Position numbers and translations under genes: made by a program. Below the pieces are notes generated by a model. It was given only the letters and a program-made list of their open reading frames with translations, was not told the DNA's origin and made no database searches. Positions 3,926-43,944 of a stretch of 64,000 nt of DNA are shown here, piece by piece. The DNA lies in IMG/VR virus record IMGVR_UViG_3300042868_007959, positions 186,001-250,000 of that record; one strand, given 5' to 3'. The first letter of the stretch is position 1. Every line of letters begins with the position of its first letter.

Positions 3926-4085
3926 TAAATATTTTTTTTAATTCTTCTTTATATAATTGTATTTCTTCTTGTAAGATTTCAATACTCTCTTTATCATTTA
4001 TATTATAAATATTAAATAAATTATTAATTTCATCTAATCTATTTTTTATAATATCTATTCTTTCTTGTATTTCTAAAACTATCAT
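3897..4085 (-). CDS. Small acidic coiled-coil hypothetical protein
   Basis: ATGA overlap with the upstream stop; fills the gap in the operon. Confidence 0.5.
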   Translation of the reverse strand: MIVLEIQERIDIIKNRLDEINNLFNIYNINDKESIEILQEEIQLYKEELKKIFNEELNGAIK

Positions 4086-5931: not shown

Positions 5932-6972
5932 TTATTTAACTTTTGGTTCGACTCTAAATGTACAATCATTAAGATTATTATCTGCATCTATAATTGTAAT
6001 ATTATGTTCCGATGGTTTTAAATTTAATGTAGTATATACCGCATTAAGTGAATCTGATCTAAAACTAATTTTTATTTTCCCGTTTTGAGGATTTTCTTTT
6101 TTCTGCATAAAAGTATAACCTCTTTCACCATTAAATTTATATTGGTTTCCTGTAATTTTCTTTATTTTACCAATTACCCTACCTCTAGTATCTTTGACAT
6201 CATATTTTTGACCTTCTACTCCTTTTGAAACTGAGGCTTCCCCACTTCTATAATCAGATATATATTTATTCTCCTCAAATGAAGATATCATAGTCATAAG
6301 TTTTTCATTACCCTCAAATTTATTATAGAAATTAGCCATACATCTCTCTACAGTTTTATATGCATCTGGATCAAACCCAAATTCTTCTAAATCTCCAGGA
6401 CCAGCCCCTTTAGACCAAGCTTTATACATTGCTTTAAGATGTTCTTTACAACTATCTATATTATTGCTAATATCTTTTCTATCTACTTTTACGTCAGTTT
6501 TAATATCTTTTTTGATACCTTTACCTTCTTTTTTGGACATAAACTGTAATTCCGCATCTTTTGTAATATAAATTTCTACGGGTGTACCACTATCATCATT
6601 AACTCTTTTTTTAACATAATACATATCTTTACCTGGTTTTGGTCTAGATACTGTCCCTAACTTCAATTTAATGTCAACAAATGACATTCTTTTCACATAA
6701 GTCTTTCCACCAATAACTTTTTGTTCATAGAAATCTAATGAATCACTTTCACTCCCTTCTATTTCTTTTTTCTTTTCATCTGTTAATTCAACAAATCCTT
6801 CAGGAATGTTCGGATTAGGTTTACCATCATCCTTTTTACCATCATCCTTCTTATCATCATCAACTGGTTTATCATCCTCACCTTCTACTAAATTCCCAAA
6901 CAATCTCTCTTCAGTAAATAAAGATTTCATTCTCAGTATTTGTTCATTTAAATTTAAAATATTTTTTCCCAT
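5932..6972 (-). CDS. Leader-bearing putative internal virion protein
   Basis: LNEQILRMKSLFTEERLFGNLVE leader nearly identical to that of 1063..3231, then a D/K-rich linker; late motif at 7005-7012. Confidence 0.6.
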   Translation of the reverse strand: MGKNILNLNEQILRMKSLFTEERLFGNLVEGEDDKPVDDDKKDDGKKDDGKPNPNIPEGFVELTDEKKKEIEGSESDSLDFYEQKVIGGKTYVKRMSFVDIKLKLGTVSRPKPGKDMYYVKKRVNDDSGTPVEIYITKDAELQFMSKKEGKGIKKDIKTDVKVDRKDISNNIDSCKEHLKAMYKAWSKGAGPGDLEEFGFDPDAYKTVERCMANFYNKFEGNEKLMTMISSFEENKYISDYRSGEASVSKGVEGQKYDVKDTRGRVIGKIKKITGNQYKFNGERGYTFMQKKENPQNGKIKISFRSDSLNAVYTTLNLKPSEHNITIIDADNNLNDCTFRVEPKVK

Positions 6973-7564: not shown

Positions 7565-7610
7565 CTTAATTTTTTTTTAATTTTTTTTTATTAGTTGTAT
7601 TATTTATTAT

Positions 7611-7618
7611 ATAAATAT
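7611..7618 (-). promoter_or_regulatory. Putative late promoter ATATTTAT upstream of tail tube
   Basis: Same 8-mer on the sense strand upstream of many structural or leader-bearing genes. Confidence 0.65.
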
Positions 7619-7635: not shown

Positions 7636-10632
7636 TTATTTTTCAATAATAATTCTTTTCTTTTTAGGGTTATTTGGGTCAGATGTATCATACACATTAA
7701 AATGTATCTCTGGATATTTCACACTCAATTCTTTCCTTATTAAATTTTCAATAATCTCTATATTACTTAAATCGTCATCACTATAACCAACACTAATACC
7801 CTCAAAATCAGGGTTATCCTTTATTTCTTCAATTTGTTCTATAACTCTTTCCACAAAACTCCTAAACGCAATTTCTTTTCCTTTTTCGGGATTTGTACTT
7901 GATATATCTAAACCAAAACTATTTAAAAATTCTTTTGAAGATACTGGATGATAATCTTGTAATTTAAGATAATCATTTATTGATGTGTCTTTAAGGTTAC
8001 CCATCATTTTTTCTTTTTCACTATAAGAAAAGTTTTTATCTATTAATACTTTAATACCATCTATTAGTGACTGTGGTGAATTTGATCTGGCAGTAATGAT
8101 AGAGAAGTCATCTCCATTAATTAAAGCCTCTTTAAAATCATTAAAACTAGGTCCGTAACTTCTACTATCTATTGCATATTTAACATCTCTAATAAAAGAA
8201 TCGTACTCTCTAAAATCTTTAAACGCTTCTAATATGTCATTATTAATATATCTAAACTCATCACCTAATTTATGTCTAATAGATCTAAATTGTTCGGTAG
8301 AAACTGAAACAGGTACCCAATGTAATCCACCAACTTTATATTCTAAATGAATTCTTGTTGGCATTTTTAAAATATTATCATCCCAATCGAATGAATATGT
8401 TTTTTTGATTGATTCAGTTAAATAACTTTTTTTATATATAATAGATTCATTTTTGGGAGTTTCATTCTCATCATCGGTTAAACCACTAACAATAAATGGT
8501 AATAACGCTGGAAATCCAGCCTCAATCAACTTATAAGCTTGTCTATATAAATCCTTTTCAAGTTTTTTTGCTTGTTCAGGATAAATTTTTTTCCATTTAC
8601 GTTCTAATTTACCTAGTACATCAAAAAATTCTCTTGGTATATTATTAACCCAAGCATCAACATCTTTTAACTCATTTCCTAATTTAACTTGATCAGTAAC
8701 ATTTTTATTTAAAAATTTATCTATAAATGTTTTAAAATAATCTTTTATTTTTTCTACACCTGTTAGATTATTAATATTTGGTTTTTCTGCACTCAACATA
8801 GTTTTATATTTTTGTAAGTCAATATCTACTAATTTCTGAGATTTATTTGTCCCCCTTAAATAATCAACTAGAAAAGTTGCAAAACCTTTATTTTTTTCTA
8901 AAGTACCTAACTCCAACAAAGTTTTAATATTTGCAGTGAATTCCGCCTCAATTTCCTTAACATGACTCCAATAACTTAAATCACTTGCAGATTCTTTTAC
9001 AATCCTCTCAATTTCGGGTGTAGTTATATTATTCTCTATATATTTTAAAAATTGTCTATCATTTAAATTTTCTGTTTTGTTTTTTATTTTTTTATAATTA
9101 TCCCCAAACTCAGACCAACTATCAATTGATAATTTTAGAGATCTAATTTTAACATCGTTACCAAATAAATTTATATCAAACTTAGTAAGTGGGATTTTCA
9201 CTGTATCCTTACTTATATATTTTTCAGGTATAATTTTATTTTCTAAAGCCCATTTTTTGAATTCATGTACCCAACTGTAATCCTTACTAGTATCTATATT
9301 TTTTTCCACCCCAAATTGACTAACCGCCTTTTCAGCAGCGTCATTATCCTCTCTTTGCCATTGGAAAAAATCTGCGTTATCTACTTCCTCATTTTTTATG
9401 GGTGTCTTTTCTCTTTTACTTTTTAAATAATCCCAAGCCTCTTTCCCATCTACGAATTCGCTTGATTTATAAGTATTAAAACTATGATTACTTTTTTTTT
9501 GTATGACGTGTGTTAATTCATGATAAATCGTATGAAATATAGTATTTTTTAATTCTTCTAAATCTTTAGGATTTCTAGCTTTTTTTATTTCTTTTGTATT
9601 GATTATAACCCATTGACCCCAATTACCATTTATTTCATCTGCATACATTCTTACCCCTAAAGGAACATCGTATCTATAAACATACTTTTCTTTTAATTTA
9701 GGATCTTTTAATATTTTTTCATTTTTAACCCAGTCCTTTATATACGGTTTTTTATCCCAATCAGCATTTTCAAAAGTCTTATCATATTCCTCTTTATATA
9801 GATCAAATAATTTATCATCATCAATTTTTGCATTATTAAACTGCTCAGGACCTTTATCATTTAAAGAAAATTTTACGTTATCACCATTTATCTGTAATGT
9901 AACATAAATAGGTTCACCAGTATTTGTATCATACCCCCATTGATCCTCAAAACCATATTTTTTAAACGACGCATCTATAATATCCCACTCATCTTTTGGA
10001 ATATCAGATAATTTTAATCCAGATACTTGTTGTGGTATTTCTTTAGAATCTGTATCTAAATCTATTTTAGTATCGTCTATATTTGATAAATTACCTTCAT
10101 TATCTATAGTATAATTTTTTATCTCACCACCTTCAGTTTTTTGTACTATATTCTTACCACTTTTTTTATCTTTAACTACAATAGTTTGTGATTTAGGTTT
10201 CGTTGGTGAGTACGTACCTTTACTTTTTTTCCATAAATCAAAAACTATCCCCCTTAAATCTCCTTCAGTTGGTAAATCATTTATCACTTGTAAAATTAAA
10301 TTATCATCTGCAGTTTTTAAGAATCCACTATCTGACCATTTTTTGAAATTAATAACTGCCTTATTTGTGTAATCCCAGTCAATTCCTGTTGATTTCCATA
10401 AAGATTTATAGTCATTTAAATGTTTACCTAGATCATCAAAACTTTTTATTTCAGTATTTAAAAAATTAGTTGCAAGTTTTGGATCAACATTCTTAATAGC
10501 CTTAGCGACTGCGGAAGAACTATCTTCTAAAGCATCCACTAATCTTCTACCAATTCCTTGTTCAGAAATTAAATTATTATTTAAAAATTTTTTTAATTTT
10601 TTAATTTCCTTTTCTGAAAATAATTTACTCAT
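7636..10632 (-). CDS. Multidomain putative polyprotein: leader + shared N-domain + zincin metallopeptidase + C-terminal HAD-like phosphatase
   Basis: LISE|QGIGRRL; HELTH (9508-9522) with downstream EIEA; FDWDDN, ITAR, K, SDDD HAD motifs after an internal YLTE. Confidence 0.65.
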   Translation of the reverse strand: MSKLFSEKEIKKLKKFLNNNLISEQGIGRRLVDALEDSSSAVAKAIKNVDPKLATNFLNTEIKSFDDLGKHLNDYKSLWKSTGIDWDYTNKAVINFKKWSDSGFLKTADDNLILQVINDLPTEGDLRGIVFDLWKKSKGTYSPTKPKSQTIVVKDKKSGKNIVQKTEGGEIKNYTIDNEGNLSNIDDTKIDLDTDSKEIPQQVSGLKLSDIPKDEWDIIDASFKKYGFEDQWGYDTNTGEPIYVTLQINGDNVKFSLNDKGPEQFNNAKIDDDKLFDLYKEEYDKTFENADWDKKPYIKDWVKNEKILKDPKLKEKYVYRYDVPLGVRMYADEINGNWGQWVIINTKEIKKARNPKDLEELKNTIFHTIYHELTHVIQKKSNHSFNTYKSSEFVDGKEAWDYLKSKREKTPIKNEEVDNADFFQWQREDNDAAEKAVSQFGVEKNIDTSKDYSWVHEFKKWALENKIIPEKYISKDTVKIPLTKFDINLFGNDVKIRSLKLSIDSWSEFGDNYKKIKNKTENLNDRQFLKYIENNITTPEIERIVKESASDLSYWSHVKEIEAEFTANIKTLLELGTLEKNKGFATFLVDYLRGTNKSQKLVDIDLQKYKTMLSAEKPNINNLTGVEKIKDYFKTFIDKFLNKNVTDQVKLGNELKDVDAWVNNIPREFFDVLGKLERKWKKIYPEQAKKLEKDLYRQAYKLIEAGFPALLPFIVSGLTDDENETPKNESIIYKKSYLTESIKKTYSFDWDDNILKMPTRIHLEYKVGGLHWVPVSVSTEQFRSIRHKLGDEFRYINNDILEAFKDFREYDSFIRDVKYAIDSRSYGPSFNDFKEALINGDDFSIITARSNSPQSLIDGIKVLIDKNFSYSEKEKMMGNLKDTSINDYLKLQDYHPVSSKEFLNSFGLDISSTNPEKGKEIAFRSFVERVIEQIEEIKDNPDFEGISVGYSDDDLSNIEIIENLIRKELSVKYPEIHFNVYDTSDPNNPKKKRIIIEK
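10185..10563 (-). repeat. Dispersed coding repeat copy 2, paralogous to 2739..3120
   Basis: Direct nucleotide and protein comparison. Confidence 0.9.
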
Positions 10633-11121: not shown

Positions 11122-11712
11122 TTATCTTCCTGTTCTTCCGTATTGTCTTGATCTTCCTTTGAAAGCCAATGCTAATCCTGCTGCAACCATAGCCAACGAT
11201 ATTGGTCCACCATAATTTCCTGCTCCAGCCATTTCTACGAAATCATGAATTTTTGTAGTCAACTCAAATTCTGACCAACCAGTTATATTTCCAAGTGCAG
11301 TGATTGCTCCCGATAAAGCTAAACCAGCTCCACCACCCATCATTGCTTTCTCACCGAATGCAGCATTTCTACCACCCATTCTTCTTGGTGTGTCTTCATT
11401 TTCTCTAATTCTTCTTTCAGACATACGACCAGAATTTGGTTCATTTACCTTTCTTTCTAACATTCTAGATTCCTCTGGTGTTAATTCGGGTAAAATTTCT
11501 TCTTTAAAGAAGTCTGAAATTAAATCAACAACTTCACTTTTAGATAATTCACCACCTTCTAAATCATTAAGATCATCATTAGAATATTTCGATAAATTTA
11601 AATTACCGTATGTTGGGTGAACATCATCCATTCCACCCATATCCTCTTTAATAACTCTTTTGACTATTCTTCTTAAATCAGTCTCAGTTAATCTTACTAT
11701 TCTTTTTGCCAT
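11122..11712 (-). CDS. Leader-bearing protein with C-terminal Gly/Ala-rich hydrophobic hairpin
   Basis: LTETDLRRIVKRVIKE leader; GGGAGLALSGAITALG and GGPISLAMVAAGLALAF. Confidence 0.6.
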   Translation of the reverse strand: MAKRIVRLTETDLRRIVKRVIKEDMGGMDDVHPTYGNLNLSKYSNDDLNDLEGGELSKSEVVDLISDFFKEEILPELTPEESRMLERKVNEPNSGRMSERRIRENEDTPRRMGGRNAAFGEKAMMGGGAGLALSGAITALGNITGWSEFELTTKIHDFVEMAGAGNYGGPISLAMVAAGLALAFKGRSRQYGRTGR

Positions 11713-11736: not shown

Positions 11737-12021
11737 TTAGGATTGTACTCCTGAATTTTGTTTGTCTTTAAGACAATTTAGTGCTGCAATAGCTTTCATA
11801 CCTTCACCCATAGGATCCTTAAGTATTATTCCCCCAATTTCCTTAACACATTTAGTATAATCTCCTGTTGTACAAGACATAGGTGCTTTAATACCTGCAT
11901 CCTCACAACATTTCACTAAATCTTCTTTTGGATCTGATTCTTCCTTCAAAAGTTTGTTTACGATTCTCTTCATATCTGATTCAGACAAAGTTATCGTTTT
12001 ACCGTTTTTTCTAATTTTCAT
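11737..12021 (-). CDS. Small leader-bearing Cys-rich protein
   Basis: LSESDMKRIVNKLLKE leader; five Cys in the remaining ~65 aa. Confidence 0.6.
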   Translation of the reverse strand: MKIRKNGKTITLSESDMKRIVNKLLKEESDPKEDLVKCCEDAGIKAPMSCTTGDYTKCVKEIGGIILKDPMGEGMKAIAALNCLKDKQNSGVQS

Positions 12022-14954: not shown

Positions 14955-15101
14955 ATTTCTTTAATTATAAATATGCGGTTTTTTATGAAAAAATATTTTT
15001 TGAGTTTGATAAAATAAATTTAGTATGAATTTTATCATACTTTTGTCATACTTATATATAAAAAGGAAATGAAGAGGGATAAAAATTTAAAAATCACGCC
15101 T
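14955..15101 (+). repeat. Direct repeat copy 1 (147 bp): late promoter, operator and first 11 codons of RHH gene
   Basis: Identical to 17278..17413 apart from an extra 11-bp tttgtcatact. Confidence 0.95.
15022..15052. promoter_or_regulatory. Putative RHH operator: AGTATGA-N6-TCATACT plus extra TCATACT half-site
   Basis: Perfect 7-bp inverted repeat and a third half-site 11 bp on, just upstream of the RHH gene. Confidence 0.55.
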
Positions 15102-29630: not shown

Positions 29631-31295
29631 TTAACCATTATTAATTTCTTCCCTTATTGTTGTAATATCTAAACTACAACCAAATAATTTAAATTTACTA
29701 ATCCCACCTTCAAAAGTACCAGCAAAATTTTCTTGTAGTACTAAGTTTTCGTCCTTAATATCAGGACCATTAACCGTATTAGATTCTATTAATCCTTGAG
29801 TACCTCCACCTAAACTGTAATTAAATGGAACACCTTGTTGTTTTTCTCTATATTCATCTAATTCCCTAAAAATAAACTCATCAAAATCCTCTAAAGTCCA
29901 TTTTAAATATCCATTAACATAAACTGTTAATACACCTTTTCTTCTAGGTTTATTCACTAATTCACATTGGGTATATTGTTCATAAGGTTTAAACCTTATT
30001 GCAACATTTGTCCACACATCTTCTGATATAATACCAGGAGAACTATAACATTCATAAATACTAGTTCCTGTAACATATTTTGTGGTTACCGAAGTTGCCG
30101 TAGTAGTTCCTGTACACCCACATCCACATTGTTCATGACAATCTACTATTGTCGTTGCCGTAACTGCCGAACAAACTCCTGTCAATATTATAGTTCTAAA
30201 CCCTATACTTCCATCATCCTTAATTCTAAACCCTAATGCGTTATCTATAATGTCCGCATTTTTATCTTTTTCTTGTGTTATTTCTGTAGTTATACCACTA
30301 AAACAACAACAACTTGATGGTTGATATACTAAAAAAGGATTATTATTTAACACTTCTTCTGAAATCACAGGTGGGGGTAAAGGATATCCTGATGAGGTAG
30401 TATACCCAGTTTCACCACTAAATAAATCCCAAAACTTATTTTCTGCCCTAGTACCCATATAAAAGAAAAATCCTTTATTATTAGGGTATGTATTATTAAG
30501 TGTATTACCTACACAAGATTCGGAACTTTTATTTAATAAGAACGTTGCCGTCCACCCATCTAAACATTCGACATCTAAACCACCTAATCTTTCAGGTAAT
30601 ATTTGATAATTGTATGGAATTGGTTTTGTATCTAAATAACATTGATACGCCTTATTCGGATCGACAGTACAAGTTTGTCCTGTTGTATCACCCGTACCAC
30701 AACAATCAGTTACGGTGTCTCCACTACAAATAGTAGGACATCTAAACCAATCTAACGGCCAAATAAATTTATTATCACTTATTTCATTGAAATAGGTGAT
30801 ATCAGATAATTTAAAGAATCCTTGATAAAACCCACCACATAATTGAGAATATCTACCTACCTCTAAGTCCGTAAGAACATCTATTGGGTAATCGTATGTA
30901 CAACCAGTAACTCTAGTCATAGAGAACCTTGTATCTGCTGATGTTAATGTTAAAGATGATCCTGTAAACGATGATAAAAAAGTTGCCCCACTGGTTGGTG
31001 TATTACAATCGTATATTATAAAACCATTATCAATACCCGTCAAACCAATATCATTTAATGTGATTCCACTACCATTGATTGTTGCACCTGTCCAAGTAGT
31101 TAAACTATAAAGAGTATTTCCTGAGTAACACGCATCATTATCAATATCAATGTCAACTAAAATACAATCCTCTAATATTTGATCATTATCTTGTTCGTCT
31201 GTACAATCATAACATAAAAATAAGTCCCAGTAGTCACTGTTACTTAATCTCATTTTTAAACAATTGTCAAAATTATGTTGGTATATATTACTCAT
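29631..31295 (-). CDS. Cys-rich virion protein with LamG/concanavalin-like fold
   Basis: WTNVAIRF...LTVYVNG...FEGGISKFKLF; about 27 Cys. Confidence 0.55.
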   Translation of the reverse strand: MSNIYQHNFDNCLKMRLSNSDYWDLFLCYDCTDEQDNDQILEDCILVDIDIDNDACYSGNTLYSLTTWTGATINGSGITLNDIGLTGIDNGFIIYDCNTPTSGATFLSSFTGSSLTLTSADTRFSMTRVTGCTYDYPIDVLTDLEVGRYSQLCGGFYQGFFKLSDITYFNEISDNKFIWPLDWFRCPTICSGDTVTDCCGTGDTTGQTCTVDPNKAYQCYLDTKPIPYNYQILPERLGGLDVECLDGWTATFLLNKSSESCVGNTLNNTYPNNKGFFFYMGTRAENKFWDLFSGETGYTTSSGYPLPPPVISEEVLNNNPFLVYQPSSCCCFSGITTEITQEKDKNADIIDNALGFRIKDDGSIGFRTIILTGVCSAVTATTIVDCHEQCGCGCTGTTTATSVTTKYVTGTSIYECYSSPGIISEDVWTNVAIRFKPYEQYTQCELVNKPRRKGVLTVYVNGYLKWTLEDFDEFIFRELDEYREKQQGVPFNYSLGGGTQGLIESNTVNGPDIKDENLVLQENFAGTFEGGISKFKLFGCSLDITTIREEINNG

Positions 31296-34200
31296 CTAAT
31301 TAAATATAGGGCGATATCATTATTTATATCTTTCATTTTTATCCACCTACTTGGTATCTGTTGATTTTTCAGTACCCTTACTTGACCGACTAACCCAACA
31401 ACATTCCATTCAGGTCTTTCAGATCTAGGGATATATAACATATTAGGATCAAAATTTTGACTTAATTTTGGTGTTTGTTCCGTTATTGTTTTGTAAATGG
31501 TTTCACCACTTTCAGTTATATAATCTATCATATCATATGAATAGTCTTCCATAATATATCTACCCCATTCATCTTTTTCATATTTTCCTACCCATTCATC
31601 TGCGGTACCTCCTTCATTGTTACCGATAAGTGTAGGGTTAGAAGAAATAACACCCATAGCGTTATTTGCGTCAACACATACTTTTATTTTATCATCTACT
31701 AATTCGACTACTGTACCGTAAGGTATTGAATCTCCTGATAAAGATTCAAAGTATTCAGCGTAATCCGCACCAGAGTTATATGTTGCACCAGCACCATAAA
31801 CATTACCAGCCGAATCGACTCTAAATGCATTTGATCTAGAGGCGTTACTGGTACCTTTACCGATAATGAAGTATTGGTTAGCGTTTGTTATATTATTATA
31901 TTTACCAGATACGTGTTGTCCTGCTTCATAAGCAATAGTACCCAAACCCTCTGAGTGAGAATATTGAGTAGTTGCAGATGTTTGGTAACCCTCTGAGTGC
32001 GAATAATCTCCAGTAGATTCTGTGGAATACCCTTCAGCGTGAGAATATTGACCAATAGATTCTGACCTAAAACCTTCAGAATGTGAATATGCCCCAATAG
32101 AATCAGTATCATATCCTTCAGAATGTGAAGCAGTACCTTGAGCTATTGTAAATCTACCTTCAGAATGTGAATATGACCCAATAGAATCTGATCTATCACC
32201 TTCAGCGTGTGAACTAATTCCTGATGCCAAAGTCTGAAACCCTTCTGAGTGTGAATAGGAAGTTGTTGCAGATGTTTGGAATCCTTCAGCGTGTGAAGCA
32301 ATTCCTGATGATAAAGTTTCTCTACCTTCAGCGTGTGAATGTGAATTAGTTGCACTTGTTTGAAGTCCTTCAGCGTGTGAACTTAGTCCTGATGCCAAAG
32401 TTTGTTGACCTTCAGCGTGTGAATAGAAAGTTGTTGCACTTGTTTGATTGCCTTCAGCGTGTGAACTAGTTCCTGTAGCCAAAGTCTCTGCCCCTTCAGC
32501 GTGTGAATAGGAAGTTGTTGCACTTGTTTGATCACCTTCAGCGTGTGAATATACCCCCAATGCTAAAGTAAAGCTACCTTCAGCGTGTGAACCAGTTCCT
32601 GATGCCAAAGTTTGGTTCCCTTCAGCGTGTGAATAGGCAGTTGTTGCAGACGTACTTATACCCTCTGCGTGAGAAGCAGTTCCTGACGCTAAAGTACCTA
32701 TACCTTCAGCGTGTGAAGAGTAAGTTGTTGCACTTGTCGGATTAGGAACTAACCCAGATTTACCGAAAAATACCCCACCTTCTGCGTGTGAAGCAGTTCC
32801 TGAAGCAATATTACCGACACCTTCAGAGTGTGAATATTGTCCTGATGCAGTTGTTCCCGATCCTTCAGCGTGTGAAGCAGTTCCTGATGCAATAGTTGTA
32901 CCTCCTTCAGCATGAGAAACATCTCCAGATGCTAAAGTACTTACACCTTCAGAGTGTGAATTAATACCACTAGCAGTTGTAGTATCCCCTTCAGCGTGTG
33001 AATTTTGTCCTGATGCCAAAGTCACACGTCCTTCTGCGTGTGACCCAAATCCTGATGCAATAGTTGATTGACCTTCAGCGTGTGAATGTCGTCCTGACGC
33101 TAAAGTACCTATACCTTCAGCGTGTGAAGAGTAAGTTGTTGCACTTGTTGGTATACCTACTAACCCTAACTTACCTAAAAATGCCCCACCCTCAGCGTGT
33201 GAAGCAATACCTGAGGCAATATTAAAATAACCTTCAGCGTGTGAATAATCACCACTTGCGGTTGTAATCCAACCCTCAGAGTGAGAACTAGTACCACTAG
33301 CAGTTGTCTGATAACCTTCAGAGTGTGAATAATCCCCACTCGCAATTGTTTGAAATCCTTCCGCATGTGATGTAGCCCCACTTGCGGTTGATAAATTACC
33401 TTCAGCATGTGAATAATCACCGATAGCACTTGTTTGAACTCCTTCAGAGTGCGACATAATCCCAATTGCAAATGTATCCGCCCCTTCAGCGTGTGAAAAA
33501 TCACCACTAGCAGTTGTTTGGAATCCTTCAGCGTGTGAACCAAAGTTTCCACCTGCAATTGTTTGATAACCTTCCGCATGTGATGTATCACCACTTGCGG
33601 TTGTCTGATAACCCTGAGCCAATGATAATAAACCACTAGCGACTGATCCACTATTTTTAACCACTATTGCGTCTACACCTGTTGATGCCGTCCAAAATGT
33701 TACTCCTGATGTGGCACCCGATGCAGATAACCAAGTGGCGTTACCAACAGAGTCGGAAACTAAAACATAACCATTTGTTGCTCCTGATGTAACTTGTAAA
33801 GTTGTTGTTTTTGTCTTACCACTAACATCTAGTTTTTCAGATGGTGTCGTAGTTCCAATACCTAAATAACCTGCAATATAATTATATCCCTCATCTTTTA
33901 TATATATACCCCATCTATTTGTTGGTGGGGGGATATTTCCAGATCTTGTGGATTGATCATCCATATAAAACCCATATATATTATTTGTTGATCCATTATG
34001 GGTTAAAGTTATATCAAAACCATTCATCCAAAAACCAACATACTCATTTATAGTACCACCTGCAGTCAAATTCCTTAATACAGATGACGAACTTTTAACT
34101 ATATCATTGTAAGTTCCTGTGTTTGTTTGAATTTGTACTACATTAATTTCGGATGTTAAAGCTTCATTACTATTTAATAATGATAAATCACCTGTATATA

Positions 34201-36436
34201 ATATTAGATTTGCCTTTGAATAAAATTCCCCATTTGTTGGTGATGTTATGTTTGGATATAATAGTGTACCGTCACCAACAACATTAGATGATGATGTGGT
34301 TGTTGGTCTAAATTCTTTGTATATAGATTTTATAGTAGATGTGTCCGTAGGTGTTGAAACTCCGTCTAAATAATAAAAAGATGGTGATGTACCTGTTGTT
34401 AATGAAGACGTTTTAAAAAACGATGTACCACTAACTGTTAATCTTTCCGTAGGTGAAGACGTACCGATACCAACGTACCCTCTTGTTACACCACTACCTT
34501 GTATATGTATATCGGGTGTATTTCCTGAAGACGCATCTTGACCAGCATAAAATCTTATATAATCTGCACTAGTAGCACCGTATTCACTTATAATATTTAA
34601 ACCGTAAGCGTTTACACCTGCATATAAGTGAACATCTCCCGGATTACCATAGTCTGGATATAGTAAATCATCCCAAGACCTAATACCTAAACTGACAGAT
34701 GCTTGTGGTTTTGTTAAATATGGTGGAATCTCCACGCTAAATCTAGGAACATTTGTTTTTCCACTTATTGCAAATCTACCCCCTACGGATGTTGGATCAT
34801 AAAAAAGTCTAGAATTTGTGTTAACGACATCTAATAAATATTGTGGGTTAGATGTATTAATACCAACGTACCCTCTTGTTACACCACTACCTTGTATATG
34901 TATATCAGGAGTTGTACCATTTGCAGTTTGTCCCGCATAGAATCTAATATAGTCTTCAGTACCCGTACCAGGTGAATTAATTAAGTTTAACCCATTTGAC
35001 GCATTACCCGCATATGTAAACATATCCCCTACTTTACCATACACAGGAGTAAGTGTATCATCCCAAGCCCTCATACCTAATTGACCTCCCGCAACTGGTT
35101 TAGTCAAATATGGTGCAATTGTTATACCTAATCTTGGTAGATTTGTATTTCCACTTATTACAACCAATCCACCAAACGATGTGGGATCATAATAAAGTCT
35201 AGAATTTGTGTTAACAACATCTAAAGAATATTGTGGAGTCTCTGTACCGATACCTAATCTACTATTGGTAACATCAATTGTAACTCCACTAGTGGAACCA
35301 AAATAAACATTTCCTTCATCCAAAGGATTAACATTTAAAGGAGAACAAGAATGTATGTTCGATACATATAAATCATTGACACAATCTCCTGACGAACCTA
35401 TTGTATCTGCAGAAAAATTAATTATTGTCCCTGAATTCGCACTTAATGATGGATCAAATAACCAAACACCGTTTGAGTCCGAATATATTCTAGAATCTAC
35501 ACCATTACTGACACCATCTTCTAGTGTAAAACCACCACCGATTGCGGTTAAATGTGTTCCACTATAATTTAAAATAATATTATTATCTTTAGATCTAATA
35601 ATTTCTGTGTTTATTGTAGTGGCAGAACCATTTACAATTACATCACCATTTATAGTAACATCCGAATTGAATGTAATACCTGAAGAACAATCATTTATTG
35701 TTTCTAAATTAACTATTGGTAAACATGATCCTGAAAGTAATGAAGATAAGGAATTCCAACCCCCTTTACCCGTATCATCTATTTGAGTCAATACATAATT
35801 AGTTGTCGCTGAACTAGCACCATTACTTATAGTAATTTTATTTGTAATTAATCTACCATCTACTGATATATTTTCTTTAGATGATAAATAATCTAACGGT
35901 CCTTTATAATCTAAGGTACCCGCAGAAAAGTTTTCTTGGGAAGCACTTGTGACACCACTAAATACATTGGGATTAAATTGAGATACATTGATAAAACTAT
36001 ATGTTACACTATAACCAGTATATTCTGTACCTATTATATAGTCACCAGTATACCCTGTTTGTGTTAATGTCCAAAACGGACCAACCACTTGTGTGTCCGC
36101 ACTCAGTATTGTAATGGGTAATGTTAACCCCGAAGTCGTAGCCGAAAATAAAGGATTAGTCCAAGTGGTTGCGGTATACCCACTAAAAAGTGGATTGTAA
36201 TAAGGTGATAATGGGTTTGAGACATCGAAAACGGTAGTTCCTGTGTTCCCACTAAACACTGCGTTTTCTGTCGAAACAACCCCTAATGAAACAGTTGTTG
36301 CGGTATTGACACCTGTTGGGTAACTACTAAATGGTATTCCTGATAGTATTTTACCGTCAAAAGTTGCAGTTTCACCAGTTATTATCTTAGCTTGTCTTGA
36401 AAGATCTAATAATGTTGTAAATTTATTTATAGGCAT
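31292..36436 (-). CDS. Large tail fibre/spike with YadA-head-like 14-aa repeats and C-terminal intramolecular chaperone (Peptidase G2-like)
   Basis: GIGTxxP fibre motifs, ~40 SH[AS]EG repeats, GADYAEYFE...YIPRSERPEWNVVGLVGQVRV. Confidence 0.85.
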   Translation of the reverse strand: MPINKFTTLLDLSRQAKIITGETATFDGKILSGIPFSSYPTGVNTATTVSLGVVSTENAVFSGNTGTTVFDVSNPLSPYYNPLFSGYTATTWTNPLFSATTSGLTLPITILSADTQVVGPFWTLTQTGYTGDYIIGTEYTGYSVTYSFINVSQFNPNVFSGVTSASQENFSAGTLDYKGPLDYLSSKENISVDGRLITNKITISNGASSATTNYVLTQIDDTGKGGWNSLSSLLSGSCLPIVNLETINDCSSGITFNSDVTINGDVIVNGSATTINTEIIRSKDNNIILNYSGTHLTAIGGGFTLEDGVSNGVDSRIYSDSNGVWLFDPSLSANSGTIINFSADTIGSSGDCVNDLYVSNIHSCSPLNVNPLDEGNVYFGSTSGVTIDVTNSRLGIGTETPQYSLDVVNTNSRLYYDPTSFGGLVVISGNTNLPRLGITIAPYLTKPVAGGQLGMRAWDDTLTPVYGKVGDMFTYAGNASNGLNLINSPGTGTEDYIRFYAGQTANGTTPDIHIQGSGVTRGYVGINTSNPQYLLDVVNTNSRLFYDPTSVGGRFAISGKTNVPRFSVEIPPYLTKPQASVSLGIRSWDDLLYPDYGNPGDVHLYAGVNAYGLNIISEYGATSADYIRFYAGQDASSGNTPDIHIQGSGVTRGYVGIGTSSPTERLTVSGTSFFKTSSLTTGTSPSFYYLDGVSTPTDTSTIKSIYKEFRPTTTSSSNVVGDGTLLYPNITSPTNGEFYSKANLILYTGDLSLLNSNEALTSEINVVQIQTNTGTYNDIVKSSSSVLRNLTAGGTINEYVGFWMNGFDITLTHNGSTNNIYGFYMDDQSTRSGNIPPPTNRWGIYIKDEGYNYIAGYLGIGTTTPSEKLDVSGKTKTTTLQVTSGATNGYVLVSDSVGNATWLSASGATSGVTFWTASTGVDAIVVKNSGSVASGLLSLAQGYQTTASGDTSHAEGYQTIAGGNFGSHAEGFQTTASGDFSHAEGADTFAIGIMSHSEGVQTSAIGDYSHAEGNLSTASGATSHAEGFQTIASGDYSHSEGYQTTASGTSSHSEGWITTASGDYSHAEGYFNIASGIASHAEGGAFLGKLGLVGIPTSATTYSSHAEGIGTLASGRHSHAEGQSTIASGFGSHAEGRVTLASGQNSHAEGDTTTASGINSHSEGVSTLASGDVSHAEGGTTIASGTASHAEGSGTTASGQYSHSEGVGNIASGTASHAEGGVFFGKSGLVPNPTSATTYSSHAEGIGTLASGTASHAEGISTSATTAYSHAEGNQTLASGTGSHAEGSFTLALGVYSHAEGDQTSATTSYSHAEGAETLATGTSSHAEGNQTSATTFYSHAEGQQTLASGLSSHAEGLQTSATNSHSHAEGRETLSSGIASHAEGFQTSATTSYSHSEGFQTLASGISSHAEGDRSDSIGSYSHSEGRFTIAQGTASHSEGYDTDSIGAYSHSEGFRSESIGQYSHAEGYSTESTGDYSHSEGYQTSATTQYSHSEGLGTIAYEAGQHVSGKYNNITNANQYFIIGKGTSNASRSNAFRVDSAGNVYGAGATYNSGADYAEYFESLSGDSIPYGTVVELVDDKIKVCVDANNAMGVISSNPTLIGNNEGGTADEWVGKYEKDEWGRYIMEDYSYDMIDYITESGETIYKTITEQTPKLSQNFDPNMLYIPRSERPEWNVVGLVGQVRVLKNQQIPSRWIKMKDINNDIALYLIR
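31945..33620 (-). repeat. Coding tandem array of 42-bp units (xASGxxSHAEGxxT)
   Basis: ccttcagcgtgtga core recurring with 42-bp period, in frame. Confidence 0.95.
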
Positions 36437-36495
36437 AACTTTATTTTTAAATAAATATTTAGAATTGTGTTATATTTATATAAAAAAGATTTATT

Positions 36496-38590: not shown

Positions 38591-39169
38591 ATGAGTAATG
38601 CAGAAAGATTAAAAGAAATTTTAAGTAGATCAAAAGCGGTTATGCAAATTACGGAGCAAAACCACGGATCAACTTCTAATGGAAGTCAAAGTAATGAATA
38701 TAGTAGTGAAGAAAAAGAAATACCTAATTTAACTGAAAATTTTATTAGGGAAAACCAAAGAACCTCTTCTTCCTCAGTAGCCCCAGTAAATGGTAAATAT
38801 AGAAACATAAATAAATCTAAAATGCCTGAAGCAATTAAAAGGGCGATGATAGATAATCCAATAGATATTCCAGAATCACCATACCATACATTTGAGTTAG
38901 AAGATGTTCCTGAGTTATTGGTGAATGAACAAAGAACTAATAACCAACCTAAAAAAACTAACAAAGTTTCTAATGTAAATGAAACTGTTAAAAGTACTAT
39001 TAACGAAAGTACAATAAGAAAAATAGTTAGAGAAGAAATAGAGAGTGTAGTTAGAACAGTGGTAGAAGAATATTTTGATAAATCACTAGTTACTGAAGAT
39101 ATACAAATCAAAGTAGGACAAACTATATTTTCAGGTAAATTAAAACCGTTACCATCTAAAAGAAAATAA
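38591..39169 (+). CDS. Possible prohead core/scaffold-like protein
   Basis: Many [ILV]xE sites and internal INESTIRKIVREE helix. Confidence 0.4.
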   Translation: MSNAERLKEILSRSKAVMQITEQNHGSTSNGSQSNEYSSEEKEIPNLTENFIRENQRTSSSSVAPVNGKYRNINKSKMPEAIKRAMIDNPIDIPESPYHTFELEDVPELLVNEQRTNNQPKKTNKVSNVNETVKSTINESTIRKIVREEIESVVRTVVEEYFDKSLVTEDIQIKVGQTIFSGKLKPLPSKRK

Positions 39170-39170
39170 T

Positions 39171-39192
39171 AAAACCCTCATTAGAGGGTTTT
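39171..39192. terminator. Bidirectional intrinsic terminator
   Basis: aaaaccctc-atta-gagggtttt between convergent genes. Confidence 0.8.
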
Positions 39193-39201
39193 ATTTTATA
39201 T

Positions 39202-39771
39202 TCACAATTGTGAAACTAATTCATTAAGTCCCTCATCAATCTGAGACTTAGGTAACCAAAAAGTTAAATCTCCGATAGAATCGATTTTTAATCTAAGCAT
39301 TTTTTTAAATACCTCAACATCCTCTTGTTTTTTAACATATGGGATATTTAATGCTTTTGAACATACTGGACCAACACCTGTCGCTTGTGATCTCCAATCA
39401 GTCAAATCTTTACCACAACATCTACAAGAAGATACATCTGAAGTATTCATTCTACCCGTAACTTGATACGCTTTAGTTGTTTCGTTAAGAACTTTAGTGA
39501 TAGTAACTAAAAACGGATTAAATTCTAATTCATTGTCAACGGCAATTCTTTTGGCAATAAATTTAGTGACTTTCAGATTAACATTAACTTCTTTAAAATT
39601 TGGTTCTGTTTTAACCACTACTGTCTTAGAGAAAAATTTTGATGCTGCGTCTAATTGTTTAGGTGTTAGTGAACCATATTTAATAAGACCACCTTTTAAA
39701 GAAAGAATAAAAACATTTGTCCCTACATATTCCTTAACATTTTTTGTAATTACTGAATTTTCCATAGTCAT
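39202..39771 (-). CDS. DUF6011-like zinc-finger protein (early)
   Basis: CRCCGKDLTDWRSQATGVGPVC; host-type promoter TATCTTTA 39787-39794 and TTTG 39814-39817. Confidence 0.7.
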   Translation of the reverse strand: MTMENSVITKNVKEYVGTNVFILSLKGGLIKYGSLTPKQLDAASKFFSKTVVVKTEPNFKEVNVNLKVTKFIAKRIAVDNELEFNPFLVTITKVLNETTKAYQVTGRMNTSDVSSCRCCGKDLTDWRSQATGVGPVCSKALNIPYVKKQEDVEVFKKMLRLKIDSIGDLTFWLPKSQIDEGLNELVSQL

Positions 39772-39859
39772 TTAGTTTTGATATTGTAAAGATACAATAA
39801 TTATTTTAATATACAAATTTTTTATCATTTTTTTATATTTATAGGAAAACTAATTTTTT

Positions 39860-41653
39860 ATGTCAAAAACTAATTTAACTGAAGAACTAAGAAGAATGAA
39901 AAACTTAATGGTGTATAATAATGGACAATATAATAATCCATTAAGGGAGGCAGTTGATACAACTACCCTACCATCGTTTAGTGAAAAGGTGGATTTCGGA
40001 GGAGGATGGTATACATTAGATGGAGAATATAAAGGGACAACTTGGAACATTCCTGATGATTTGAAGGATGAGTTGTCGTCAGTTAAAGAATTTTTATTAA
40101 AAAATCCATCTGGGTATATTGTTGACGTAAGAATAGATTCGGGTGAATCAAAAATACCTAATGTGGATGCGACAGGTAAAAAAGGAACTTATCCTAGTAA
40201 CAAAGTACCACCTAAATATCTATCTAATGAACGAATGAAAACAATTAAAGATTATGTTACAAGCGTTTTTGATACTTGGGTTGAAGAAGGTGTTATAAAA
40301 GATAAATTAAATATTGTTACAACAGAACCAGTTATTGGGGGAACTAAATGGGTTGGTCAGGAATTTTGTCCAGAAGATAAAAGAGCTGGTGATCCTGAGG
40401 GATATAAATGTACAACCGCATTTAATGATGGATTGGCTAAGGGTAAATATGCCGATTTTAAGAAAGCGTATATTGAGGAGCAGTATGTTGAGGTAGTAAT
40501 TAAAGTTAATAAAATTGAGGGTGAAGAAGAGACGCCAAAAGAGGTAACAGGTAAAGATCCATTAGAATGTGCAACAAATTTAAAAATACGAATTTGGGTT
40601 GCGTCACACGACTGTCAAAATGCCGAATTTTTTGTTTATGCAAATAATACCCCATTAAAAAATACAGTGGGGGGAATGACTGCAAATTTAAATAATAGTA
40701 GTGTTGATAGAGGGGTACCTAGAACAAACTCACAACCAACATTTCAGTCGGAATTCTTAAATCCAGGATATGGATATTTACCAAATGGAGATGGTACGTA
40801 TGGTTATAAATACGGTTCAATAAATAAAGAAGGAAATTTAAGGGGGGGTAGATCCGATACATTTATTTTAAGCGAACAACAAGTTAAAGATATAATCAAT
40901 GAAAATCAAAATAAAAATAGTAAATCAATAATCTCTTTATGGATGATAGCCACTACAAGTAATGCACATAAGGATATCCCTCAAGTGACAATAACTTTGG
41001 GTGACGAAGTTATTTACGACAAAGCCCCTAAAATTACTAAAGGAAAACTATTATCTTTTGATGTTTGTACAAAGAAAGTAACTGAAAGTAGTGATACTCA
41101 AGAACCTGATTTAGGGGCACAAATTAATAAAATAGTTAGGGAAAAAAGAGAATTACAGGAAAAAAATATTACATCTGGTAAAGTCACAAAGAAAAAACAA
41201 ATGAAATTAGATCAAAAAGGTGTAGTCTTAGAAAGATCCGAAATTCTAGTAGATAAAATTACATCTTTATTATCTTTTCTATCTAAAAATATAACATCTA
41301 CAACAGAGGTAAGTGATGACGTTAAAAAAAGACTATCAGATGATTTTATTGAGATGCAGAAAGAATTAAAAGGAGATATAGAATCGGGAATACCATCATT
41401 AGAGGCAACTTGGGATGGTGAAAAATTAACATTTGTAGATAAAACTATTAGAAATAGTGATTTATATGGTGATATAAGAATGGATATTACTAAATTTTAT
41501 AAAGGATTTATCTTAGCGTATTATAGATTTAAAAAATTCAACCCAAAAGGGATACCGACTGAATCGGATTGGGCGGGTAATGTAGATGGTAAAAAACTTT
41601 TAGAAAGAATGAAAGTACCTAAAATATCACAAGAATTTGGATTAACGGTATAA
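39860..41653 (+). CDS. Leader-bearing protein with OmpA-C-like domain
   Basis: NLTEELRRMKNLM leader; FLLKNP...I.SGES...LSNERMKTIKDYV...EQYVEV; late motif 39835-39842. Confidence 0.6.
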   Translation: MSKTNLTEELRRMKNLMVYNNGQYNNPLREAVDTTTLPSFSEKVDFGGGWYTLDGEYKGTTWNIPDDLKDELSSVKEFLLKNPSGYIVDVRIDSGESKIPNVDATGKKGTYPSNKVPPKYLSNERMKTIKDYVTSVFDTWVEEGVIKDKLNIVTTEPVIGGTKWVGQEFCPEDKRAGDPEGYKCTTAFNDGLAKGKYADFKKAYIEEQYVEVVIKVNKIEGEEETPKEVTGKDPLECATNLKIRIWVASHDCQNAEFFVYANNTPLKNTVGGMTANLNNSSVDRGVPRTNSQPTFQSEFLNPGYGYLPNGDGTYGYKYGSINKEGNLRGGRSDTFILSEQQVKDIINENQNKNSKSIISLWMIATTSNAHKDIPQVTITLGDEVIYDKAPKITKGKLLSFDVCTKKVTESSDTQEPDLGAQINKIVREKRELQEKNITSGKVTKKKQMKLDQKGVVLERSEILVDKITSLLSFLSKNITSTTEVSDDVKKRLSDDFIEMQKELKGDIESGIPSLEATWDGEKLTFVDKTIRNSDLYGDIRMDITKFYKGFILAYYRFKKFNPKGIPTESDWAGNVDGKKLLERMKVPKISQEFGLTV

Positions 41654-41667
41654 TAAATTAATAAATT

Positions 41668-43725
41668 ATGAAAAAAAACAATTTAACAGAAGAATTAAAT
41701 AGGATAAAGAATCTAATGGTTTACAATAATGGAGACTATAGAAATCCTATATATGAATTTGAGTTATTAAATGAAGCCCCTACTGATGAAGTAAAAGAAG
41801 TTTCTTTACAAGCCAATTTTAAATCAGGTAGATGGAAAGATACATCGTTACCAAAAACAGAAATTTTGGCTGAACTTAAAGAAGCAATAGATTGGCTAAA
41901 ACAAAAATCTAAAGAAATAAAAGATAGTGGTGGTATAATAGGTGGACAAGCAAAAATTTTAACAGTTCAAATAGAAGCTGGAGAATCACAAGTAACCAAT
42001 TACGATGCTGAAGTAGATCCTAAAGTCAAATTAGAAGAAAAAGTTTTATCTGAAAGAAGGGCTAAGACTATACAAACTTTCTTAACTAATTACTTTAAAA
42101 AATTACAAAAAGATAAGACTATTGATGCAATACCTGTATTTGAGGCACCTGTAGTTAAAATTGGTCCAACACCTTGGAATCCTAAAGGAGGTGATGAAGC
42201 GACAGATAAAAAATTTACTAAAGAACAATATATAAAAGTTAATTTTAAATTAACTCCACCTTCAGCTTGTTTGGAGGGATTAGTTATTGAGGTTATGTAT
42301 GTAAAAGAACCGAATCCTTCATTTCCATGTAGAGGAGGACACCAATGTGACGACGCATTATTTGATGTTTATTTGAATGAGACTAAATTAGATGGGGTAG
42401 CTAACTTAAATAATGCCGAAGATGGTGGAAGTAGAAGTTCTAAATTTGTAGTTTCACCACAACAAGCGTTATCGATATTAGGTAATAAACCAGGAAACAT
42501 TATGATATCTTTTGTATGTAAAAACAAAGATAAAAGATGTCACTCAAGTACACCTGAGATTAGATTAAGTAAAGGTGGTACAGTTGTATATCACGAATGT
42601 ACACCCTCAATCAGTGAAACTAATGATTATTCTAAAATAGATGTGATGGAATTAGATGCGTGTGGTAATTTAATTAAAAAGGGTCAAGAAAAGAAAACTG
42701 CACAAAAAGATGAATCTTTAATGAAACCACCTGCAGGTATCAAAAAAGGGTGGGTGGTTTACGACATTGCAACTAAATTACCTGTTTTTAAAGATACTTC
42801 GGCTTCTACAGATTTACAAGAAAATATTTACAAAAAATACTTACCATTATACGGTTATAATTTTGGTGGTTACGAACCTGAGATTTATAAAGGTAATTGT
42901 AATGAAGCAAAAATTTACGGTGGATGGTGTTTGTGGTCAGGTATAAAAATTAATTATGTAAATGATCAATTTTGTGGTGGAGCTGAATCGGGTTCGTCAT
43001 ATAAATTAGGTTCAGAAAGTACGGTTAATACTAATTTAGGTAAAAGTATAACTAATAGTATGAGGAATTATATGTTAGATAATTGTGATAGTTCTACTAT
43101 GGGAGTAGAATTGGGTGACATAATAACAGTTAAAAAAGATGATATACCAAAACAATTTAATTTTAAAAGATTATATTCTCCATTAGGAGTTTATTCTAAC
43201 CCAAAAATTGTCGGTAATGCATCTACACCATTTAAATTAGTTCCAAATGAAAAACCTAATGGTATAAATTTCACACCTAAATTATTTACAGATTTTGTTA
43301 ATAATATATATGGCACAGAACAAACCACAATAAAAACTCAAAACCTAATCAATTTAATCACAACCACTACTGTTTCTGATTTAAGTGATTCGACAAATGC
43401 AATATCATTCTTCATCACCACTACAGATGAAACTTTTGGATCTACAACATTTCCTAATTCAACAAAAATCGATTCGTATGTTAGTAAATATAATACATTT
43501 AAAAATGAAAAATTAACGGGAAGTGTTGTAGTTGGTGGATTTAAAGAAATACAAAATACATTTCTTAGTTTAAGTGTTATCAGAAAATATGAAAAGGGTA
43601 TTTTTAAAAACAATACTTTACGTGTTATGTTATATGGAAATCAACCATATTCATCAGTTGCGCAAAAATTGATATCTTTAGGATTGATTAAAGAAAAAAG
43701 TGGTAAATTAGTTTTATCTAAATAA
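41668..43725 (+). CDS. Leader-bearing paralog with OmpA-C-like domain
   Basis: NLTEELNRIKNLM leader; I.AGES...LSERRAKTIQTFL...EQYIKV; second domain shared with 39860..41653. Confidence 0.6.
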   Translation: MKKNNLTEELNRIKNLMVYNNGDYRNPIYEFELLNEAPTDEVKEVSLQANFKSGRWKDTSLPKTEILAELKEAIDWLKQKSKEIKDSGGIIGGQAKILTVQIEAGESQVTNYDAEVDPKVKLEEKVLSERRAKTIQTFLTNYFKKLQKDKTIDAIPVFEAPVVKIGPTPWNPKGGDEATDKKFTKEQYIKVNFKLTPPSACLEGLVIEVMYVKEPNPSFPCRGGHQCDDALFDVYLNETKLDGVANLNNAEDGGSRSSKFVVSPQQALSILGNKPGNIMISFVCKNKDKRCHSSTPEIRLSKGGTVVYHECTPSISETNDYSKIDVMELDACGNLIKKGQEKKTAQKDESLMKPPAGIKKGWVVYDIATKLPVFKDTSASTDLQENIYKKYLPLYGYNFGGYEPEIYKGNCNEAKIYGGWCLWSGIKINYVNDQFCGGAESGSSYKLGSESTVNTNLGKSITNSMRNYMLDNCDSSTMGVELGDIITVKKDDIPKQFNFKRLYSPLGVYSNPKIVGNASTPFKLVPNEKPNGINFTPKLFTDFVNNIYGTEQTTIKTQNLINLITTTTVSDLSDSTNAISFFITTTDETFGSTTFPNSTKIDSYVSKYNTFKNEKLTGSVVVGGFKEIQNTFLSLSVIRKYEKGIFKNNTLRVMLYGNQPYSSVAQKLISLGLIKEKSGKLVLSK

Positions 43726-43944
43726 TTATTCAGATTCCACACTAAAACGAGTGGATTTAATAATTTTTTTATCTTCTTTAGACATTTCTCTAATAGTCTC
43801 TTTGTATGCACGTTTTAGGATTCTATCGTATTGACGTTCAGTTATACATGTGCCATCCGTCAACTCAATCGATTTTTCAGTCGCACAAGACGTAAGTGAA
43901 AAAATACTTACAAAGAATACTGTTTTAAAAATTAAATTTTTCAT
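43726..43944 (-). CDS. Small lipoprotein (early)
   Basis: Signal peptide with lipobox LTS-C; TACATTTG at 43965-43972 and TTTG at 43993-43996. Confidence 0.75.
   Translation of the reverse strand: MKNLIFKTVFFVSIFSLTSCATEKSIELTDGTCITERQYDRILKRAYKETIREMSKEDKKIIKSTRFSVESE

Follow-up and report, generated by a model that had tools for sequence, protein, structure and literature searches.

The prohead proteases of phages T4, phiKZ and SPN3US cleave after Glu, and in T4 internal proteins that are hypervariable and otherwise unrelated enter the scaffolding core by means of a short capsid-targeting sequence (PMC5694885, PMC3012670). Here we describe two adjacent open reading frames (ORFs), ORF-A and ORF-B, in a 64,000-nucleotide stretch of viral DNA. 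This whole stretch, referred to below as the window, comprises bases 186001-250000 of the 253,879-bp linear IMG/VR virus record IMGVR_UViG_3300042868_007959, which is estimated to be 78% complete. We found that ORF-A and ORF-B are members of a large uncharacterised phage family in which a leader precedes a divergent OmpA-like domain and a conserved Cys/His beta-sandwich, in some cases followed by a variable tail. Their leader resembles the T4 tag in several respects, and we tentatively consider whether it serves to carry wall-binding proteins in the virion.

The window has a G+C content of ~29% and encodes tail sheath and tail tube genes together with a gp23-type major capsid protein (PF07068, E 4.2e-62). 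A gp21-type prohead protease (Peptidase_S77, PF03420, E 4.4e-24) is encoded directly beyond the window end, and an acidic, scaffold-like ORF of 435 amino acids (aa) is located between the capsid protein gene and the protease gene. With its gp23-like capsid protein, acidic scaffold and gp21-type prohead protease, the phage is an uncultured 254-kb myovirus whose head is of the T4 type. Its sheath is only ~33% identical to those of the nearest deposited phages, and it therefore has no close cultured relative. A tblastn search of ORF-A and ORF-B against 50,697 deposited phage genomes returned zero matches, and thus there is no cultured relative with proteomics.

The ORF-A and ORF-B pair and its predicted OmpA-like domain

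ORF-A (39860-41653, + strand, 597 aa) and ORF-B (41668-43725, + strand, 685 aa) lie 14 nucleotides (nt) apart. A first-pass annotation, made from the sequence alone, had described them as tandem paralogs in which a common leader, an OmpA-C-like region and a shared Cys/His block are followed by unrelated C-termini, and both the coordinates and this layout proved exact. BLASTP aligned the first ~430 residues of the two proteins (E 1e-21, 25% identity), residues 1-22 are almost the same, and the region that they share is made up of the leader and two domains, D1 and the Cys/His beta-sandwich D2. The OmpA-C-like strings were located as LSNERMKTIKDYV in ORF-A and LSERRAKTIQTFL in ORF-B, and the H.C..A.F.VY.N.T.L...ANLNN block is present in both, while BLASTP found no significant similarity between the C-terminal parts (ORF-A 413-597 versus ORF-B 343-685). 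The features of the pair, in window coordinates, are as follows.

39835..39843, + strand: promoter-like motif ATATTTATA, 25 nt upstream of ORF-A
39860..39949, + strand: ORF-A leader, aa 1-30; predicted amphipathic helix (LTEELRRMKNLM), ending in L28-R29-E30
39965..40525, + strand: ORF-A D1, aa 36-222; predicted OmpA-like fold; C170 and C184 lie in an inserted loop
40553..41095, + strand: ORF-A D2, aa 232-412; predicted beta-sandwich, the most conserved part
41096..41653, + strand: ORF-A C-terminal helical domain, aa 413-597, and stop codon; variable among homologues
41668..41775, + strand: ORF-B leader, aa 1-36; contains I28-Y29-E30 and L34-N35-E36
41788..42258, + strand: ORF-B D1, aa 41-197; GESQVTNYD ... 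LSERRA; D1 hidden Markov model (HMM) match, E 4.6e-28
42259..42693, + strand: ORF-B D2, aa 198-342; shortened, with the invariant H, C, N, R, H and C kept; D2 HMM match, E 1.5e-26
42694..43725, + strand: ORF-B C-terminal region, aa 343-685, and stop codon; unrelated to the ORF-A C-terminus; no Pfam match

Pfam and PHROGs scans of ORF-A, ORF-B and their halves gave nothing usable and no catalytic family. A word search yielded 72 metagenomic homologues, none with a Pfam domain, and the alignment built from these (A1) shows four parts: the leader, D1, a highly conserved D2 and a variable helical tail. When a D1 profile was searched against 1.84 billion representatives, 339 clusters were retrieved at E <=1e-3 (195 at 1e-10), many of them ~370-420 aa long and made of leader, D1 and D2 alone. 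Since homologues were recovered by both searches, ORF-A and ORF-B are real genes.

An AlphaFold2 model of ORF-A calculated with alignment A1 had a mean predicted local distance difference test score of 81.8 and placed D1 at residues 39-218, D2 at 235-410 and a helical domain at 419-597; the leader was modelled at low confidence, with a helix at 6-16. In a Foldseek comparison with the PDB, the best matches were all OmpA-like peptidoglycan-binding domains (E ~6e-3, probability up to 0.99-1.0), among them A. baumannii OmpA (3TD3, 3TD4 and 3TD5), OprF, MotB, RmpM, PorE, TagL and ZorB. All 40 of the best 40 structural rows were OmpA-like, and each spanned the whole target domain. The model and these matches bear out the OmpA-like assignment of the first-pass annotation, and we regard the predicted fold of D1 as fairly secure.

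The residues of D1 that are invariant in A1 are E96, S97, N101, D103, L121, R125 and Q208, and among 94 distant family members the Arg is invariant and the Asp nearly so. In the register of a marginal hhalign match between D1 and E. coli OmpA, Pal and MotB (E 0.048, probability 1%), D103 coincides with the Asp in the motif (H/Y)-T-D, and L121-S122-x-x-R125 with L-S-x-x-R-A. The diaminopimelate of the peptide stem is held in E. coli OmpA by an Asp (D241) and an Arg (R256), and D1 probably keeps this ligand-binding acid/Arg pair. A sub-threshold match of the Pfam OmpA model to ORF-B in a six-frame scan (12.9 bits, E 0.025, ~aa 99-147, model positions 33-70) falls on the same stretch as the hhalign-aligned motif. 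An OmpA-family cluster with mostly phage members ranked third in a protein-language-model look-up (score 0.88), which serves as a lead only, and a search of the D1 profile against PDB sequences returned no OmpA chain, chance matches alone. We conclude that D1 constitutes a separate, very divergent family.

D2 is marked by the residues H250, C252, F257, N262, N276, R331, F335, H370 and C403, which are invariant in A1. It weakly resembles Ca-binding, carbohydrate-binding and PLAT beta-sandwiches, and the fold comparison matched no enzyme fold. Across Pfam, PHROGs and the D2 fold comparison, no peptidoglycan-hydrolase domain was recognisable in ORF-A or ORF-B.

The first-pass annotation had also stated that neither protein carries a Sec or lipoprotein signal, and this was upheld by a Kyte-Doolittle hydropathy scan, which found no Sec, lipoprotein or transmembrane segment in ORF-A or ORF-B. 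The maximum 19-residue window was 0.93 for ORF-A and 1.13 for ORF-B, and the N-terminal 10-residue window was <=0.5 in both, while many other proteins of the same genome have classic Sec or lipoprotein signals. Across the family, a hydrophobic N-terminus was found in only one of the 121 full-length representatives.

The leader and the genomic setting of the pair

The leader has the core motif (I/L)-(T/S/N)-E-x-(Q/E/D)-(L/Y/M)-(K/R)-(R/K)-(I/M/L). When a leader HMM was run against the 326 ORFs of the genome, at least 13 gave strong matches (14-23 bits) and ~25 gave weaker ones, and it is secure that the leader is a modular tag on many otherwise unrelated ORFs of this genome. The first-pass annotation had called it capsid-type and had missed its occurrence across the genome. 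A shared leader is indeed present; at least 13 and perhaps ~40 ORFs carry it, the capsid label is an interpretation, and the phage's own gp23-like major capsid protein lacks it.

The cargo behind the leader differs from protein to protein and includes D1/D2, PG_binding_1, M23 and domains without a match. Outside the window, PG_binding_1 is found in two leader-tagged ORFs (E 5.8e-12 and 7.8e-12; G000:C1:3469-4170 and 4413-5195; L014 and L015), and Peptidase_M23 in a leader-tagged protein of 751 aa (E 2.4e-33; G000:C1:111654-113909; L022) whose M23 domain has its deposited-phage matches mostly in tape-measure and other virion proteins. None of these proteins has a signal peptide. The likely endolysin, with PG_binding_1 and GH19 (G000:16006-16830; L061), has no leader, which sets the leader-tagged wall-directed proteins apart, as a class, from the lysis enzyme. 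Seven more leader ORFs lie on the - strand of the window (1063-3231, 3242-3925, 4082-5920, 5932-6972, 7636-10632, 11122-11712 and 11737-12021), where they surround the tail tube gene between the sheath and baseplate-hub-like genes; none of the seven matches Pfam or PHROGs. In two of the proteins from this group, of 998 and 722 aa, QGIGRRL.DALE..SS.VAKAI stands immediately after the Glu, which suggests a shared mature N-terminus. Outside the window (G000:1-65000), numerous small ORFs of ~90-300 aa start with short leader variants such as M-K-x-x-I-K/R-R/K-I-L-K-E-E, and these may belong to the tag class of ORF-A and ORF-B.

The T4 prohead protease prefers Leu/Ile-x-Glu. Nearly all leaders of this genome terminate in (L/I)-x-E, for example L-R-E30 in ORF-A, I-Y-E30 and L-N-E36 in ORF-B, and RILKE-E elsewhere. 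The same ending is found in 66 of 67 full-length ORF-A homologues, the exception being V-T-E, and (L/I/V)-x-E occurs at residues 15-50 in 114 of 121 full-length representatives of the wider family. Leaders of the wider family fall into several distinct sequence classes, yet all share the hydrophobic-x-E ending. An S77 protease is encoded in all five of the longest IMG/VR contigs with a D2 homologue (89-304 kb, one rated complete) and in none of five shorter family-bearing fragments (51-86 kb, 18-29% complete). Such co-occurrence is necessary for cleavage by this protease and is not independent proof of it.

A further protein of 633 aa (G000:C1:161747-163648, - strand; L030; L005 211-2112) has a leader almost identical to those of ORF-A and ORF-B and a sub-threshold Pfam OmpA match (16.5 bits), and on this basis it was initially considered as a third paralog. 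We rejected this candidate because the D1 and D2 HMMs miss it and BLASTP matches its leader alone; an hhalign match to it arose spuriously from a Cys-rich insertion present in a single row of the alignment. It counts only as one more protein that bears the leader. The protein contains ~30 cysteines in repeated C.CP.GM..NEETK.C.CP modules, and the ORF-A homologue P0005 contains an inserted Cys-rich module like these.

Comparison with related contigs revealed exchange at the ORF-A position. In the IMG/VR relative L004, the flanking proteins to either side show 97-100% identity and ORF-B shows 97%, while the ORF-A slot holds a 642-aa protein of 36% identity. In the metagenome contigs L011 and L012, the flanks are 94-100% identical and ORF-A is absent, leaving a single ORF-B orthologue (88%) that bears an ORF-A-type leader. 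DNA identity to L004 and L011 is 98.3% up to position 39943 of the window (ORF-A codon 28, the leader end), breaks down beyond this point and returns at 41655, 13 nt ahead of ORF-B. As identity breaks at the leader end, the leader-coding DNA is a recombination boundary, and these alignments indicate that ORF-A is an exchangeable, dispensable cassette.

The motif upstream of ORF-A belongs to a 9-mer, ATATTTAT[AT], that occurs <=70 nt upstream of 65 of the 326 ORFs; its density in the genome would predict 4.4, an underestimate given the higher AT content of intergenic DNA. Within the window it occurs 30 times, against 18.7 in shuffles. Most of the recognisable structural genes have it upstream, and the genes so preceded include those for sheath, tube, scaffold, prohead protease and fibre. 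It is probably the late promoter of the phage. ORF-B lacks an upstream 9-mer and probably shares the transcript of ORF-A. A scan of the region for consensus sigma-70 promoters found sites no more frequent than chance. A bidirectional terminator with a perfect 12-bp stem lies at 39168-39195 between convergent genes.

Further sites of the 9-mer in the window are at 36472-36480, 14966-14974 (- strand) and 7610-7618 (- strand). Immediately upstream of ORF-A, a DUF6011 protein (E 1.8e-8) is encoded at 39202-39771 on the - strand. On the other side, a 72-aa lipoprotein gene with the lipobox L-T-S-C (43726-43944, - strand) abuts the ORF-B stop codon, and its product is 97% identical in L004 and L012 and 75% identical in L011. 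Long repeats of the S-H-A-E-G type (YadA-head-like) and, at the C-terminus, a Peptidase_G2 autocleavage domain (E 2e-35) mark a 1714-aa fibre-like protein encoded at 31292-36436 on the - strand, which is 81% identical to its L004 counterpart, against 97-100% for neighbouring genes.

Proposed virion delivery and the alternatives

We favour, tentatively and with somewhat less than even confidence, a model in which ORF-A and ORF-B are leader-tagged cargo that goes to the prohead, is trimmed after Glu, travels in the particle and, once released to the envelope, is held on peptidoglycan by D1. Within it, cleavage, packaging and peptidoglycan binding are steps that we infer. The leader would act like the T4 capsid-targeting sequence, docking its cargo in the core of the prohead, and would be removed by the gp21-like protease after E30 in ORF-A and after E30 and/or E36 in ORF-B. 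The mature proteins would be carried in the virion and freed into the host envelope at infection, where D1 would bind peptidoglycan via its invariant acid (D103 or E96) and R125. A host-specific activity under diversifying pressure would reside in D2 and the variable C-terminus, which would explain the hypervariable ORF-A slot. The first-pass annotation had proposed that the proteins could reach the periplasm by ejection from the virion, there to serve as an anchor for the injection channel or as a block to superinfection, both of which would be conjectural roles. The parts of that proposal concerning an OmpA-like fold and a missing export signal stood, and the context, namely the leader end, the gp21-type protease, the upstream motif that ORF-A shares with the structural genes and the cargo swap, fits delivery by the virion without proving it.

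Several observations weigh against this model. Neither ORF-A nor ORF-B matches Pfam OmpA (PF00691) at its curated cut-off of 27.2 bits, weak matches to it occur in only 3 of the 94 distant family members (best E 0.005), and the hhalign match of D1 to OmpA-type profiles is only marginal. Up to ~40 ORFs have leader-like N-termini, many of them small and in a non-structural-looking region, a large number for cargo of a capsid. The tail module contains several of the leader genes, between the sheath, tube and hub genes, and tail proteins would not be substrates of a head protease. In the AT-rich proteome of this phage the tripeptide (L/I)-x-E is common, and the co-occurrence with S77 may reflect confinement of the family to one phage clade. 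The prevailing view of T4-type internal proteins, moreover, is that they enter the cytoplasm along with the DNA and do not remain periplasmic.

Other roles for the pair can be set against the same observations. The proteins might act at lysis, accumulating late in the cytoplasm and reaching the wall via holin lesions as wall-binding accessory or lytic factors, in which case the leader would have nothing to do with the capsid and would be a tag for regulation or assembly inside the cell. Canonical endolysins, too, carry peptidoglycan-binding domains and reach peptidoglycan with no signal peptide, a point that the first-pass annotation had missed; the motif upstream of ORF-A is of the late type, and the PG_binding_1 and M23 domains of other leader-tagged ORFs occur in endolysins too. 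We nevertheless consider a role in lysis unlikely, since ORF-A and ORF-B have no recognisable catalytic domain, the obvious endolysin is leaderless, the M23 domain of the 751-aa leader protein matches mostly tape-measure and virion proteins, and allelic replacement or loss such as that of ORF-A among genomes that are 97-100% identical is unusual for lysis genes. Hypervariability is, on the other hand, typical of receptor-binding proteins, and the pair lies a few genes from the variable 1714-aa fibre gene with its Peptidase_G2 domain (81% versus 97-100% for the flanks). ORF-A and ORF-B could accordingly be external virion components, whether fibre, baseplate, head decoration or adhesin, that bind a host surface glycan or the peptidoglycan exposed in tail penetration, the leader then being an assembly or chaperone-docking tag. 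The weak likeness of D2 to Ca-binding, carbohydrate-binding and PLAT beta-sandwiches, the conserved cysteines, which suggest an oxidising environment, and the many leader genes in the tail module are in keeping with such a role, to which we give a rather low probability.

A more sceptical view would take the OmpA-like fold as a scaffold for some other ligand, with no peptidoglycan binding, and the shared N-terminus as the result of common descent or recombination among paralogous families, with no targeting signal. Here the structural comparison is pertinent, in that the best 40 rows were all OmpA-like and covered the whole target domain, and the residues invariant across the 339 clusters are those aligned with the ligand-binding motif. 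That distinct leader classes all end in hydrophobic-x-E also argues for selection on the peptide, and we find this view improbable.

Extending the virion-delivery model beyond the pair, it is conceivable, if doubtful, that T4-head-type jumbo phages of low-GC aquatic hosts encode dozens of envelope effectors that share one capsid-targeting propeptide, are matured by the prohead protease and are delivered to the periplasm. The OmpA-like/Cys-His family (339 clusters), the PG_binding_1 proteins and the M23 peptidase would be examples, and the leader DNA would serve as a recombination handle for the exchange of cargo in an arms race. If the leader is a capsid-targeting propeptide, T4-style tagging would take in numerous proteins of diverse kinds, many of which would be directed to the cell wall and not to the cytoplasm, and the packaged and ejected proteins of uncultured jumbo phages would be predictable from sequence alone. 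The combination of a divergent OmpA-like domain with a conserved Cys/His beta-sandwich would be a new, widespread and unannotated family, and the leader a candidate tag with which to load foreign proteins into large capsids. If the pair instead acts in lysis or as an adhesin, it would represent an ordinary new family of phage wall-binding proteins.

Comparison with described systems

The closest parallels are the internal proteins of T4 (IPI-III and Alt) and the processed ejection proteins of phiKZ and SPN3US, in which, as here, a short N-terminus is common to unrelated proteins (PMC3012670, PMC5694885). In those phages the N-terminal sequence ends at a Glu-type prohead-protease site, to which a motif read from the sequence corresponds in the present leaders. 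T4-type systems and this genome also have in common a gp21-type protease, a scaffold and a gp23-type capsid protein, and hypervariable cargo exchanged at the leader boundary; the cassette behaviour of ORF-A matches the known pattern of T4-type internal-protein loci. There are differences too. The leader is longer than the T4 capsid-targeting sequence (23-36 aa versus ~10), far more ORFs are tagged than in T4, some of them in the tail module, and the domains of the putative cargo point to the cell wall and not to cytoplasmic targets.

T7 gp16, T4 gp5 and the M23 domains of tape-measure proteins provide a second parallel, as these are particle proteins that act on peptidoglycan at entry without Sec export. 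This genome likewise encodes an M23 protein with the leader, and its M23 domain finds matches among tape-measure proteins, whereas ORF-A and ORF-B have a predicted binding-type fold and no recognisable hydrolase. With respect to OmpA-like domains (OmpA, Pal, MotB, RmpM, TagL and ZorB; PF00691), D1 is missed by the Pfam model, is ~65 residues longer, including a Cys-flanked insertion, and is fused to a novel Cys/His beta-sandwich. It is also phage-encoded, stands behind a cleavable-looking leader and belongs to proteins without a signal peptide, lipobox or membrane anchor. Among the top-ranked matches of a full-text literature search, no OmpA-like domain was reported in a phage internal, ejection or exclusion protein. 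We would rate the combination of an OmpA-like wall-binding domain with T4-type tagged cargo as a new variation on known systems.

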